A DNA stretch of 64,000 bases from Blastocystis sp. Blastoise (taxonomy: Eukaryota; Protista; Bigyra: Opalinata): positions 682,001 to 746,000 of the forward strand of contig JBBPEB010000014.1 of the NCBI GenBank assembly GCA_039096225.1. The letters are read 5' to 3'. Shown here one piece after another: positions 99 to 21,362 of this stretch (within the stretch, counting starts at the first letter, position 1; the number at the start of each line of letters is the position of its first letter). The notes beneath the pieces were generated by a model. The model saw only the letters and a program-made list of their open reading frames with translations. It was not told the DNA's origin and did not search any database. Made by a program: the position numbers and the translations under genes.

Positions 99-1580
99 AT
101 GTCGTCAGAAGACAAAGTGCCTGATCTGTTCACCTATTGTGCTAATTTGGTTGTAGAAGATTGGGACAATAAGCATATGAAATTAATATTTGCTGAACAA
201 ATCAAACAGTATTCTGTTATTTCTTTAGTCTTAAATTTCTTTATAGTTTGAAGCCACATATCGCTGAAGCTCTTTTGAATACATTCCGTAAGAAAGGAAA
301 GGTACATATTGATGTCTATAATGATTTATTAATTATCAATTATTATTTATTTTTTAATTTAGTTAACAGATAGTGTATTTTGTCAATTGATTCCTTGTAT
401 TCAGGATTCTATTGATATTTCTGGTTGTGATCATCTTCGAAAAGCTGCTATACGTCAAGTTTCATTTTATTGTCAGTCTCTTGTAAGTTTTTTTATAGTA
501 TTTTTTTTTTAATTATTATGTATATATACATATATAGAGATCTATTAATTTTTCAGGATGTAAACAAGTTACAAATGGTTTAGTTCGTCAAATCCTTCAA
601 GTAAGTTATTAATTATTATTATAAAATTATTTTTGTGGACTCATCCTAGAGTCTTATTTATATTAATAGTATTCTATACACTCTATATATTATTTTTCAT
701 TATTATTTATATTGTGTACATATATATAGTGTTGTAGTCGTCTACATGTGCTTATTCTCACTGGATGTACACAAGTAACAGATTATGCATTCACTTCAGA
801 TTCGTCACCTTTTACTCCACTTATTGGTCTTTATTCCTTGCGAGTATGTATAGTTAAGCTATTTATTGTTTTTATATTTATTGCTTTTGTTTTATTTTAT
901 ATATATTATTTGTTTTTGTTTTTATTTTTGTTTATTATTTATTGTTTATTATTTATTATTTTTGATATGAATTTGATATAAATATGTTTATTCTATATCT
1001 TTTCTTTTTAGAGTAATAGTATAATAAATATATTATATATATATATGACTCTATAGATTTTATCCCTTGCTTATTGTCATCAACTGAGTGGGTTATTTAT
1101 TCCTTCGTTTGTTAAGGCATGCTATTATCTACATGAAATTAACTTAGAAGGATGTAGAGCTATTACGAATGATAATATTCAAGTAATATATATATATATA
1201 TATATTACTTATATTCTTCATATTTTTTATTTATTTCTTCTTTATGATATCTGTTTTTTAATGTATATATTCACATAAGTTCTTCTTTTTGTACACAATA
1301 TTTTTTAATCATTTTTAGTCACTATTTCCATAATTATAAATATATCTTATAATTCTTCTCTTCTAGAAACTGATTAGTTGTTATTCCTTTAAAGCAGTGA
1401 ATCTCTCAGGAGTGATCAATCTCCAGGATGATAGTATATCTATGCTACTTCATAACGATACCTCTTCTGTCTTAACACAATTATCTCTATCGTATATTAT
1501 TATAACATCAATATAGAATTTATCATTGACCATTTAGTTACAATATTTATTTATATTATTTATATATATATAAACTCTTA

Positions 1581-1629
<49 letters not shown>

Positions 1630-1803
1630 GTAAATATATCTTCAGATACCCTATCTACTGTTCTACCTCAACTTAAAAAGCTTAAAGTATATATAAATAA
1701 TTAATTTATTTTAATATAATATATCCTATAAATATATAGACATTAGAACTTGGTAATTGTGAACATCTCTCTGATTCTTTGCTTATAAATATTGTTAAAA
1801 GTA

Positions 1804-1839
<36 letters not shown>

Positions 1840-2294
1840 TTGTTCAAGACTTTCTTCCTTAGATATTAATAATTGTGGACTTCTTACAGATACAAGTATT
1901 CAATATGTATTATCGCACCTACAATTATCAGCTTTAAATGTATCCTACTGTAATCAATTAACAGGTATTTATTATCTTTATTCTGCTTTTATTTTTTATT
2001 ACACAAACTTTTTATGATTAATTATATATAACTTTATGTTTCTATTAGATGAAGCCTTTAAAACTGCTCAAGAACAAACATTGTCTTCTCTTCAATACTT
2101 AAAAATCACTTGGTGTACACAAGTTACAGACACTATTATAAATATACTACATACATATAAAAATCTAAAACAAGTATTATCTCTATTTCATATATATATA
2201 TAATATACTCTATTATTAGGTTTCTGTGAAAGGATGTAATTTACAAGAAGATGCACTTCAGTTAATTAGAAATCAAGGAATTAAATTAATATAA
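99..2294 (+). CDS. Leucine-rich repeat (cysteine-containing, AMN1/FBXL-like) protein, about 12 exons
   Basis: Hand-spliced with GT-AG introns from ATG 99 (MSSEDKVPDLFTYCA) to TAA 2292-2294. Repeated LxLxxCxxVTD units: INFSGCKQVTN, LILTGCTQVTD, LDINNCGLLTD, LNVSYCNQLTD. Confidence 0.85.
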
Positions 2295-2529: not shown

Positions 2530-3107
2530 TTATTCAGATTCATTTTCAACCTTACGGATATGAGCCCTATAGAATAAAAATTGAAAATAATAATCACATT
2601 AGATATTTAATAAAATATATATAAATCAATATATATATAGAGTGGCATCCTTGGCGTTGGTAACAGTGATGGAGAGTTCTTCAGCACGTTTTACGATTTC
2701 AACACGCTTTCTGGCAGAAACGCTGTGAGCGATTTCAGCACAGTAAGTTCTGTTGTGCATCATGAGGAGTTCTAAATCACGAACGTTATTAATGACGTAC
2801 TTTCTTAAACCGTTAGGAAGCATATGTCTGGTGAGTTTGTTGGAACCATAACCAATTCTGGGCATGGGGGTAGCACCTCGGAAACGACGTCTAGCACGAC
2901 AATCGATACCTTTAGGTTTACGCCAATGTTGATTAACAAATCATATAAATAAAATAGCAAAAAGAAAAGAAAAAAAGGAGATAAAAAAGGAATCATCAAA
3001 TAAAAACGTACATTCATTCTCTTGAATTTATCAGCTTGGAAACGAACCCACTTGTTCGTCTTCTTCTTAATAATGTTATATCTAACAAGAGGAGCAGCCT
3101 TCACCAT
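2530..3107 (-). CDS. RPL32: 60S ribosomal protein L32 (eL32), 3 exons (3107-3012, 2931-2651, 2566-2530)
   Basis: The spliced product [86 protein letters not shown] is colinear with the eL32 consensus. Both introns need a non-canonical splice site (see findings). Confidence 0.95.
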
Positions 3108-3535
3108 TTTTAAAAAGTAACAATTGAGTATGTGTAATTTTCTTAATGATCATATTGATAACGTAGCATAAGAATATAGCAAATAGAATAAGAATATATT
3201 CATACTTTTAATCAATAAAGTGATTTACCACGAAAGAAAATTACTCTAAAAAGTTGAAAAAGAAACAACTTGTATGTGGCAAAGAGACTTTTTTCATAAA
3301 CTCAAAATTTTATGATGAACATGATCAAAGTTGAATCACTATACGCTCAACAATTCTATTCTCTTGGGAAAAGAGCAGAAAATGTGTAGACATTTGTGAA
3401 TAGAAAACGTCACGTTGTCAACAAAAGAATCATAAATATCATGGATGTTCTAAAACACATCACTTTACATAATTGTATGATAGTTTCACGGGGATTCCCT
3501 ATTATTTATTTTTACTTTTTTCTTGCATTTAATCC

Positions 3536-9813: not shown

Positions 9814-11398
9814 ATGAATAACATTAAACGACGTTTAAACGATGATGGAGTTACTGTCATTACTGTATTTTGTCTTTTCTGATCTTCAAGTATATTCTAT
9901 ATTTATAGAAAACATCAAATGAGAATAATTTAATAAAAAAGTATATTTGTTTTGAATTATTTATTACGTATTATTCAGATCATCAACAATTAAGGAAACA
10001 GAACCTACTGATATTCCTGCAAACACAAATTGGGGTTGTGTATGTCATTTTAAATTTTCTTATTCTTTTCAAAATCTTTTCTACATATAAAATTTTGTGT
10101 GCTAATAACTATATATATTTATAGGGTTTATTCTGTCAAAAGAAAGGTATATTGCTTATCGATTATTTATAAATTTCTATTTCTATAGTTGAAGAGTATT
10201 TATTTTTGTATTTCTGAGCTAGTTTCTAGTCATTTTATTATTTTTATTTAATATTTCTATCTATATACTCATTCAGGCCCACCAAAACAATCGTATATAT
10301 ATCTGTTTTTTTCTATATATATATCTATATGTATATATATATATATATATATATAGGTTCCTATTCCTACATTTAGTAGTATATTCAAACAACAAGCACC
10401 TATCACTAAAATAATTAAGATTCATGAGAATAATATTTCTGTTCTTCAAAAGAGAAAACAGTATTTAGAAACAAAATTATATATGTATAATCGTATTAAT
10501 GATGAAAAAATGGAAGAAGTTATTGATGTATATAGATATATATTTATAATTCAATGTTTTCGTCGATATTCTATTTATTATTATTGTAATAGTGAACAAC
10601 TTATCTATATATATATATATTCATTTAAAACAAATAACAGAAATGTTTAATATATATATATATAAATATATATAGAAGATTGCGGAGACATCGTCATCGG
10701 ATGACGACGTCGTAGCACGTGTCTTCAAAGAGAATCACCAGAAGAAAGAGGCTCAAGAGAGACAACTCTATAAGGATGGAAAGAATAATATTATATATAT
10801 ATATAATAATCAATTTATACTTTGTGTTTTATCATCTCTTGATTTGTTATTGGTATTTTCTAAGTATATTCTCTTATTACTATTGTTTTTATGTTGATAT
10901 TATTATATATCTTTTATTATTAAATATCTATTATTATTATATATGTTTAATATATATATCTATTATGTAGTATATATACGGACATTTCAGAGTTAGAAGA
11001 TGTTCGAAATGCGAAGTATATATATATGAAATATAAGGATGAGTTTATAAGGAAGATGGTTCGATATATAAATGATAAGAAGGTATATTATATATATATA
11101 TATGATTTATTTCTCTCTTTATATTTTCTTTACATATATAATTCATTTAATTTATATATATATTAGATGTATTGTATATCTCTTGCAAATGAGTATATAC
11201 GTGTTGAGCGGGAATATTTAAAGCGGGAAACAGAATTAGATAAATATACATATTCCTATGGATTCAAATATGATCATTCTCAACAAGTCATGCCTACACG
11301 TATATATTTATATATATTATTTGATTATATGTGTTCTATATATATATATAATAAATAACATATATGTATAGTATATATATAATCTATATAGTATAATG

Positions 11399-18658: not shown

Positions 18659-18730
18659 GGGTATGTGGAACAGTGGTAGCTCGTTCCCTTCGCAAGGGAA
18701 AGGTCCCGGGATCGATCCCCGGCATATCCA
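18659..18730 (+). tRNA. tRNA-Ala (anticodon CGC)
   Basis: Acceptor stem GGGTATG/CATATCC with the G3:U70 alanine determinant. Anticodon arm TTCCC-TTCGCAA-GGGAA, T-arm CCGGG-ATCGATC-CCCGG. One A-C mismatch in the D-stem. Confidence 0.95.
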
Positions 18731-18745: not shown

Positions 18746-19476
18746 AAATTCTATTTTTATGGTCTATTTATTTCAATTGAAGTAATAGACTCAATTTGTT
18801 ATTAAAACTAGGATGTTTATATATAAGAAAACAGTATATTATCGTTTGAAAAATTAAAATAACTGAAAAATGCATGAAATATTGTTATAATCACTTTGTA
18901 GAGTCCTTATTTTCCTTATAACCACTAGAGAGTAGCAGTCAACATATTGATGACACAATAGAAAAGTAAAAGGTTATTATTATTGATAAAAAAATGAAAA
19001 AAACTATGATGATGAACTATAGGAGATATATTAGTATTTAAAGAGAAGAGAATCCATAGTTAGGATGAAAATCACGTACAAGGGTTTCATTTGAAATGCA
19101 TTATGAACCAAAAAAACGAAAACTCTGAATGAAAATGAAATGACGAAATAAAATATAAAAAAATCGTGAACAATTAAAATCATGATAATTTCAGACATTA
19201 AACTACATGCTTTAAAAATATCCATGGAAAAACACAGATCACAAAAGAACGACAAATTATGAATGACGCTTTCTATCCCTTAATTGTATTTCTATCATAA
19301 TCCAATTGTTTCCGTGGTTTATTTTTGTATTAAAAAAAAAATAAAGAAACGATTGGCCACTTGGAATAAATGTCAATTATGGAAAAAATAAAAGAAAGTT
19401 CCCTTCTTATTCTGTTCATTTCCTTTGTGGACTCTCAAATACACATATTTTTTTTTATCAAAGAACGAAAACGAAA

Positions 19477-20310
19477 ATGGCTTCTGTTCCTCAAAGTCCT
19501 TTTTTGGTAAAATCTCCTCTTATTAAGAATAATGCTCCTGGTGCTAGTCCTTTCTTAGTAAAATCTAATCTTTCTTCAACTGTACCTACGGTACAACCTC
19601 TCGTTGTCCCTGATGCTAATGGCTGTGCAAACGGAAAATGATCCGGCAAGAAGCCTGAAGTTAAAACAGTTGTAAAGGGTAATGAAACTTGTTCACTCAT
19701 CGTTTCTTTCCTTTCACTTATATTGAGTATTCCTGCTCTTATAGGTGCCTGATGTTGGCCGGCCCTTCTTATGGGTCTTATTTCTGGTGTTGTTACTGAA
19801 ACTGCTCGTGTTACTGGGCATTGGATCAGTTTTGGCCTTACTATGGTTATGATGTATGGCCTCGCTATCTATGTTTACTTCCATAGAAGAAAGAGAACTC
19901 AAGATAAGGATCATTGGCATAAATGGGGTCCTTTCTATTTAACTCTTGCTGCTGCTTTCCTTGTTAATCTTGATCCTTCAAGACATATCTTCCAAGATCT
20001 TGAAATCTGGCCTGCTCCTGGTTCTTCCGAATATAGACCTGATTGTCATGAAGAAACTTTCTACTGTTTATCTGTTGTCGGTTGGTTATTTACTGTTGTC
20101 TTTACTTATTCTGGATTCATCTTCCTTATTATTGGTACTCTTTGGAATGCTGATATGAAAGATAAGTGTAAGAAGATTTCTAATCAATGGAAGGAAATGA
20201 AAGAACAAATTAAGTCTCGTAGAAACGACAAGAGTAAATCTTCTAATACTGCTTTAGATCAAAATCTTATTGATCCTGAAGCTAATAAAGAAGGTTATAC
20301 TGCTGTCTAA
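19477..20310 (+). CDS. Multi-pass membrane selenoprotein (MSP-like), 277 aa, Sec at codons 55 and 92
   Basis: ATG 19477 is in frame with ORF 19771-20310 and is interrupted only by TGA 19639-19641 (GCANGK-U) and TGA 19750-19752 (SIPALIGA-U-CWP). Codon usage is coding-like throughout, with no intron-like sequence, and SECIS elements lie downstream. The resemblance to the algal/protist MSP family is from memory and unverified. Confidence 0.9.
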
Positions 20311-20795
20311 GTTGAAAATCCATGAAGAAGAACAATAAAGACGAATATCTATTGTTTCTTTTTATTTTTTGATGATTTCTTATTGTATTCATAATGTATT
20401 CGCTATAAATAATGAAATAATCTATATTCTTATTATAATATCCTTTATGCCAGGGATATATACTATTATTTGAATATATTTTATTTTGCTATTTATAAAA
20501 AGCTAATCTTATGAATGAAGTAATAACAATAATAATGAAGTTAGATAAAATGAAATATATGGATTTGAAAATATCTTTTGTTCTTATTGGTAACTGCATA
20601 TAAAAATGTATGGAAAAATTAAATAAATAAATCTTATGATATTTTAGAATTTTATATATGAATATATATATGAAATATCTTTTATATATCTGAGAAAGAA
20701 ATATGAAATCATAAAGAGTTCCAACACCGCTCTTTATGATGAATGTTTGAAATAATGAGATATTATTTTCAAATTTTAAATAAGATTTATGAAAA

Positions 20796-20863
20796 GTATT
20801 TATAGATGGATGATATAAAATACATAAACCTTTGAATGGAGGTATTTTATTGAATGTTAAATA
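20796..20863 (+). promoter_or_regulatory. SECIS element A (type II)
   Basis: ATGAT at 20810, helix ATAAAATAC/GTATTTTAT, AAA (20826-20828) 11 nt after the core, CC/GG mini-stem, TGAA (20851-20854). Confidence 0.8.
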
Positions 20864-20942
20864 TTTTTTTCATATAGGATCTTATTTAAGTATTCTTTCT
20901 TTATTTATCTCAAACCTTTTATTATAAATTATTTATATATAC

Positions 20943-21008
20943 TCATATGTTTATGACGCTATTATATTAAACCATACCATTGGCATATACTAGCTGAACC
21001 CTATATGA
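20943..21008 (+). promoter_or_regulatory. SECIS element B (type II)
   Basis: Helix I TCATATG/TATATGA; ATGAC at 20953; helix II GCTATTATAT/ATATACTAGC; AAA (20969-20971) 11 nt after the core; CCA/TGG mini-stem; TGAA (20995-20998). Confidence 0.9.
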
Positions 21009-21362
21009 ATATATATTTATAATTTCTAAAGGCAAGATTTATTTTATTTAGCTATATGATATATGTTTTTATTGTTTATATCTGATATATTAATGTTTGA
21101 ATTTATTTTGTTTTTAATTATATTAGCTAATTTTATATATATAAATATTGAATTGTTTATTTGGGTTTTAATTTTTTATATTTGCTAAATATGTATTTGT
21201 TTTTATTATAAATATAATTAAATATAACTTTGTTTTTTTTAAATTTTTGTTTTGTTCAATAAAGAAAACTTTTAGCATTTATACAAACAATTATTTTTTG
21301 TACGAAACAGTGAAAAAGAGAAAAAAAATAAGAACAGCTATATTTATATATATACTATTATT

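Follow-up and report, generated by a model that had tools for sequence, protein, structure and literature searches.

Why does a selenoprotein mRNA with two UGA codons carry two SECIS elements in its 3' UTR? Selenoprotein P is the textbook two-SECIS mRNA, and its 10 or more UGAs make dissection hard. The locus described here lies in a 64-kb stretch of AT-rich eukaryotic DNA (about 23% G+C; "the window" below always means this whole stretch) from a genome of 33.3 Mb in 34 contigs, and it raises the question for a membrane selenoprotein (MSP) whose gene is single-copy in that genome. The analysis confirms two genuine-looking SECIS elements, A and B, in one transcribed 3' UTR of this two-UGA gene (Table 1).

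The open reading frame is a member of the MSP family of multi-pass membrane proteins, which have two Sec residues and are known from Dictyostelium, Chlamydomonas, Volvox and Ostreococcus (Lobanov et al. 2007, PMC2375036); the Dictyostelium and algal proteins were matched by their published description. The gene itself, with its two Sec residues, is no new invention but part of an already published family. Homologs were sought with separate pieces of the protein, unjoined across the UGAs, and the C-terminal piece found 24 in public assemblies at 45–57% identity (E = 1e-28 to 1e-51), plus one at 82%. Homology extends over the transmembrane core, with 26 invariant columns in the homolog alignment. 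No piece of the protein matches a Pfam family, and a protein-atlas look-up returned only sub-threshold 7TM-like neighbours.

Both UGAs, which are 37 codons apart, are conserved in about 25 homologs. Our own translations of the fetched loci have TGA at both positions, and the motif IPALIGA-UGA-CWPAL is kept in every homolog translated across the site of the second UGA. In the longer public gene calls W stands at both UGA positions, from which it follows that the gene callers used a code in which UGA means Trp. The public calls P0002, P0003, P0008, P0010 and P0020 either read the UGAs as tryptophan or place the start downstream of both, and because of such calls the family is systematically mis-annotated in metagenome protein sets.

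The genome has two genes for tRNA-SeC(tca) (G000:C5:69863-69948 and C14:272975-273060), two SPS loci with the AIRS domain (C16:978812-979027 and C13:423965-424186) and a SepSecS gene; a Sec-type thioredoxin reductase has been described in Blastocystis (PMC3129679). The tRNA-Sec gene and the SPS gene are each present in two copies that score identically and lie on different contigs, which may reflect a segmental duplication or retained haplotypes.

Table 1. Positions of the features discussed, in window numbering unless another sequence is named.
Feature	Sequence	Position	Strand	Details
MSP (membrane selenoprotein) CDS	window	19477..20310	+	277 codons plus stop TAA at 20308-10; intron-less; from translation, homologs and RNA contigs
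First in-frame UGA	window	19639..19641	+	codon 55, motif C-A-N-G-K-U; UGA also in homologs
Second in-frame UGA	window	19750..19752	+	codon 92, motif G-A-U-C-W-P; UGA also in homologs
MSP 3' UTR	window	20311..21145	+	about 835 nt; 3' end approximate, being the RNA contig end
Stable hairpin upstream of both SECIS	window	20699..20748	+	-16.8 kcal/mol, z = -5.75
SECIS A, type II	window	20798..20863	+	helix I 20798-803/20858-863; ATGA 20810-13; AAA 20826-28; TGAA 20851-54
SECIS B, type II	window	20944..21007	+	helix I 20944-48/21003-07; ATGA 20953-56; AAA 20969-71; TGAA 20995-98
First SECIS of L001	L001	11339-11395		Rfam 30.9 bits, R2 23.1 bits; counterpart of window B
Second SECIS of L001	L001	11596-11653		R2 18.4 bits; counterpart of window A
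Thioredoxin reductase (TR) gene	L094 (G000:C8:2091000-2097000)	about 2950-3168		ends GKCUG-stop; SECIS 3112-3168
Rdx-fold gene	L087 (G000:C5:746183-749329)	about 1338-1916		CTSUG motif; SECIS 1856-1916

The two elements share one layout: ATGA is followed by one base, 11 nt and AAA, and then come a mini-stem, the helix's return strand and TGAA. In each, the AAA starts 12 nt after the ATGA, which is the canonical spacing, and the AUGA and 3' GA quartet that makes up the kink-turn core of type-II SECIS is present. Helix II has 9 bp in A (20815-23 with 20842-50) and is paired at 9 of 10 positions in B (20958-67 with 20985-94), and the duplex energy of helix I is -9.0 kcal/mol in A and -10.5 kcal/mol in B. 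The mini-stems, CCUUU/GGAGG with a GAAU loop in A and CCA/UGG in B, are visible in both the Rfam and the RNAfold structures, and for B the minimum-energy fold is the SECIS shape itself (z = -3.1). The UTR contains no ORF longer than 41 aa. An earlier note on this DNA had described two type-II elements of the same geometry and unrelated primary sequence, some 500–650 nt past the stop, and this description is borne out: the motifs and their spacing were confirmed at 20810 and 20953, A and B are no more similar to each other than any pair of SECIS (alignment z = 2.0), and the cores lie 499 and 642 nt beyond the MSP stop.

How well do the elements score? With the Rfam model SECIS_1 (RF00031), B reaches 33.0 bits (20944-21007) and A 20.6 bits (20810-20859). 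Neither attains the gathering score of 35 bits, which counts against a reading with two functional elements. However, the same model at E <= 10 reports neither the TR nor the Rdx-fold SECIS of this genome, so that its threshold is too strict for this AT-rich organism. On 20 MSP homolog transcripts it gave only three weak hits. Whole-genome searches with it and with the family model R2 (see below) gave none, an uninformative outcome because 67 Mb is too large a space for a model of 60 nt to reach significance.

Models of the family's own elements were also used. From 77 fetched loci encoding MSP relatives, SECIS-like elements were sought downstream of the stop codons with a pattern-plus-energy scanner, which made 34 hits as against 3 in reverse-complement controls. 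Two covariance models, R1 (18 sequences) and R2 (43 sequences), comprise SECIS of MSP homologs only, with sequence from neither the window nor the ortholog L001 described below. Across the whole window on both strands, R1 places B first (27.8 bits) and A second (22.2 bits); R2, over the same 128 kb, again has B first (26.9 bits) and A second (20.6 bits); its best decoys score 14.9, 13.5 and 12.7 bits, the nearest about 6 bits short of A. On the MSP UTR alone, the R2 E-values are 6e-5 (B) and 1e-3 (A), such values being rough for custom covariance models. Of the 56 R2 hits in the homolog loci, 53 are in sense orientation; the other three, in antisense, belong to the weakest (11.5 bits). A rigid pattern scanner and an energy-filtered one both missed element A as well as the second element of L001.

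L001 is an 18-kb metagenome contig with an MSP ortholog at 82% amino-acid identity over the aligned part. Its gene order is the same as in the window, with a tRNA gene and a poly(A)-binding-protein gene upstream of MSP, and the tRNA genes (18659-18730 in the window, 9553-9624 in L001) have the identical Rfam score of 56.4 bits, which confirms the synteny. The MSP 3' UTRs of the two have almost no 9-mers in common. The second SECIS of L001 nevertheless shares GGAUGAU and the apical AAACCUUU..GAA with A (alignment z = 4.9), and the first shares the apical AAACCAU.CCAUUGG with B (z = 3.7), compared with z of about 2 for the non-matching pairings. Since the first element of L001 matches B and the second matches A, the order of the SECIS is reversed between the two species, pointing to elements that were duplicated and lost, or rearranged, within the UTR.

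The earlier note had proposed looking for covariation in orthologs, and this is what L001 provides, having kept both SECIS with compensatory changes in helix II. In a comparison by hand, each matched window/L001 pair has six double compensatory changes in this helix. When six SECIS are taken together (A, B, both from L001, and those of the TR and Rdx-fold genes), 86% of the cells pair, against 48% in shuffles and 36–48% in slid controls, and double changes are found in all ten of the ten helix pairs. The L001 gene has two introns of about 33–36 nt (10370-10470 and 10793-10826), the MSP gene of the window has none, and introns of the genes neighbouring it are about 100 nt long. The GC content of the L001 coding sequence is much above that of the window gene; genome composition is strongly diverged between these close relatives.

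Three further stretches of the UTR were tried as SECIS and rejected: 20652-20700, which is TA-rich and scores 13.3 bits with R1 and 10.9 bits with R2; 20316-20379, which scores 11.3 bits and has a 3' GA that is not adjacent to the helix; and 20739, which is an ordinary hairpin. The stable hairpin about 60 nt upstream of A was also rejected as a SECIS, with at most 6.4 bits by R2 and a counterpart in L001 that has no AUGA/GA core. It is flanked by AUGA...GA in the window, but not in L001, where it receives no score from the SECIS model. Its stem words UCAUAAAGA and UCUUUAUG recur in an L001 hairpin at 11273-11308, upstream of the first SECIS there, and it may serve this UTR as a conserved accessory element.

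Does a protein with two UGAs need two SECIS? Two elements per 3' UTR are also found in L033, L035, L050-L052 and L056. One detectable element is present in the MSP homologs L019, L023, L032 and L062, whose 3' UTRs are complete, the contigs ending in poly(A), and several further homologs have one SECIS despite hundreds of bases beyond the element. On the conserved-domain tree, which is without L001, L035, L051 and some fragmentary loci and has several long branches, the two-SECIS state takes at least 3 changes; it recurs in at least three further MSP lineages. The earlier note had spoken of an independently evolved multi-SECIS design for decoding two UGAs. The independent part of this stands, because the number of changes on the tree implies that the design arose, in several MSP lineages, independently of selenoprotein P. 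The supposed need does not: L015 and L016, which have a single SECIS and were translated across the N-terminal region, have both UGAs, and since single-SECIS homologs carry the same two UGAs, a second SECIS is not required for decoding them. The second SECIS in MSP is a recurrent, dispensable addition.

In L050, L051 and L052, which are marine metatranscriptome contigs with two SECIS each, the C-x-x-x-x-U segment is replaced by an N-terminal domain resembling the second half of the Rdx/SelW fold. These proteins may represent a fusion of two selenoprotein modules.

What, then, would two elements do in one UTR? By the standard eukaryotic mechanism, SBP2 would attach to the AUGA/GA kink-turn core of each SECIS, and the bound element would bring eEFSec and Sec-tRNA(Sec) to the ribosome, where the UGAs at 19639 and 19750 would be read as selenocysteine instead of stop. 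Most likely A and B would be additive or redundant, making it likelier that a single pass decodes both UGAs, with neither SECIS assigned to one codon. We infer SBP2 binding, the activity of each element and their additive action, and consider it probable that the MSP 3' UTR holds two functional type-II SECIS in tandem that act in this additive or redundant manner. A rather unlikely alternative, in line with the division of labour that the earlier note had considered possible, is that A and B are specialised, either with one element for each UGA, or with one providing efficiency and the other selenium responsiveness. Such a design would have been gained repeatedly within a single protein family, and, as A and B are swapped between related species, it would work in either order.

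It is also rather unlikely that B is the only working SECIS and A an inactive or decaying SECIS-like hairpin, comparable to the upstream element of human SEP15. A scores below B in every model; almost all of its pairs are A-U, including all of those in its helices, and its minimum-energy fold does not stand out from those of shuffled sequences (z = -0.23). A single SECIS also suffices in other MSP mRNAs, and an inactive second element has a precedent in human SEP15 (cited in PMC2874816). On the other hand, modest scores and weak folds are the norm for the working SECIS of this genome: R2 finds exactly one element in the TR gene, at 19.2 bits (the next hit being 8.5), and exactly one in the Rdx-fold gene, at 20.4 bits, so that A is level with elements that are the sole SECIS of their genes, and the fold of the Rdx-fold element is likewise weak (z = +0.35). 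The GAUGAU...UGAAU flavour is common to all three. Moreover, L001 has retained A within a UTR that is otherwise unalignable: the core context is the same, the apical part almost the same, and 6 of the 9 helix pairs have changed on both sides.

The reading in which both elements are functional also presupposes that they lie on the MSP mRNA. In run X1 (presumed RNA), one contig covers 19448-19997 and another runs unbroken over 19968-21145, with depths of about 1,200 and 878 compared to about 0–28 in the flanking DNA. Run X2, a poly(A)-selected metatranscriptome of animal gut from a different study, has contigs at 19465-20033, 20029-20586 and 20733-21053. Since contigs span the CDS through both elements, A and B lie on one continuous RNA with the coding sequence, and the mRNA does not end before 20796, the outcome that the earlier note had named as refuting its reading; assembled contigs cannot fix its true 3' end. 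The X1 contig stops at 21145, a few bases short of TTGTTTAT (window 21145-21162), and GTTGTTTGTA is found at about 11686-11696 in L001, about 35 nt past the second SECIS. A similar motif, TGTTTGTT, is reported downstream of Blastocystis poly(A) sites.

Past 20586 the depth of X2 drops from 155 to about 1, and it returns to only 11.6 over 20733-21053. The drop between 20586 and 20733 could mark a proximal poly(A) site; alternatively, this extremely AT-rich sequence could have dropped out of the assembly. In the former case A and B might serve alternative poly(A) isoforms, with one SECIS or none on mRNAs from the proximal site and both on those from the distal site; this is an improbable account, and equally so the proposal that goes with it, that the number of SECIS tunes expression as in human SELENOP and SELENOS variants. 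SELENOP mRNAs without SECIS 2 do exist (PMC5133445). However, contig depth after assembly reflects abundance poorly, the AT-rich stretch 20590-20730 may just assemble badly, a single X1 contig crosses the entire UTR, and no contig ends between A and B.

That A and B resemble SECIS by chance, in AT-rich non-coding DNA, with the UGAs decoded by some other signal or undecoded, is strongly disfavoured: ATGA, AAA and TGA words are common at such a base composition, a loose pattern scanner found 11 candidates in 128 kb, and both elements are under the curated Rfam threshold, but 3 of these 11 candidates are inside the 0.8-kb MSP UTR, A and B take the top two model scores with a clear gap to the decoys, the model hits in homolog loci keep to the sense strand, both elements are conserved in L001, and both UGAs are conserved across the family.

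How does this arrangement compare with known systems? SELENOP mRNA has several UGAs and two tandem SECIS in one 3' UTR, and its mRNA variants differ in SECIS number (PMC5133445, PMC5727441). Like vertebrate SELENOP, the window MSP has several in-frame UGAs and two tandem SECIS on one transcript. However, SELENOP is an unrelated, secreted protein with 10 or more UGAs, whereas the window MSP is a membrane protein with 2 UGAs from a gut-associated microbial eukaryote. The two SECIS of SELENOP have been shown experimentally to have distinct roles, while those of MSP are known from sequence; and in MSP, unlike SELENOP, both elements are of type II and their order differs between two related species. 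Two SECIS-like elements have also been predicted in the 3' UTR of Ciona intestinalis SelW1, with one Sec codon (PMC2874816), and the same paper cites two in human SEP15, again with one Sec codon, the upstream element being reported as non-functional. Like these, the window MSP mRNA is a non-SELENOP mRNA with two predicted SECIS in its 3' UTR. SelW1 and SEP15 have a single UGA, however, and MSP two, and the Ciona case is a prediction in one species, whereas both MSP elements have been retained in a second species with covariation.

Within the MSP family, the text of PMC2375036 on MSP gives two Sec residues and makes no mention of two SECIS elements, and the window gene is without the Dictyostelium-specific UGUA preceding the SECIS core. 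A prior description of two SECIS in MSP was not found in the literature searched, which included an algal selenoproteome survey and was incomplete in coverage. The two-SECIS MSP mRNA is a new instance of a known design, and a rare natural two-signal case outside selenoprotein P.

The finding has practical consequences for annotation, since public gene calls truncate the MSP protein or read its UGA codons as tryptophan, and the Rfam SECIS model misses real elements of this AT-rich genome that a family-trained model recovers. For the biology of selenocysteine decoding, MSP is a far simpler natural model than selenoprotein P, with exactly two UGAs and two dissimilar, conserved SECIS, and the one-SECIS and two-SECIS relatives within the family are built-in comparisons. 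It could serve to find out what maintains a second SECIS, be it efficiency, processivity, redundancy or regulation.
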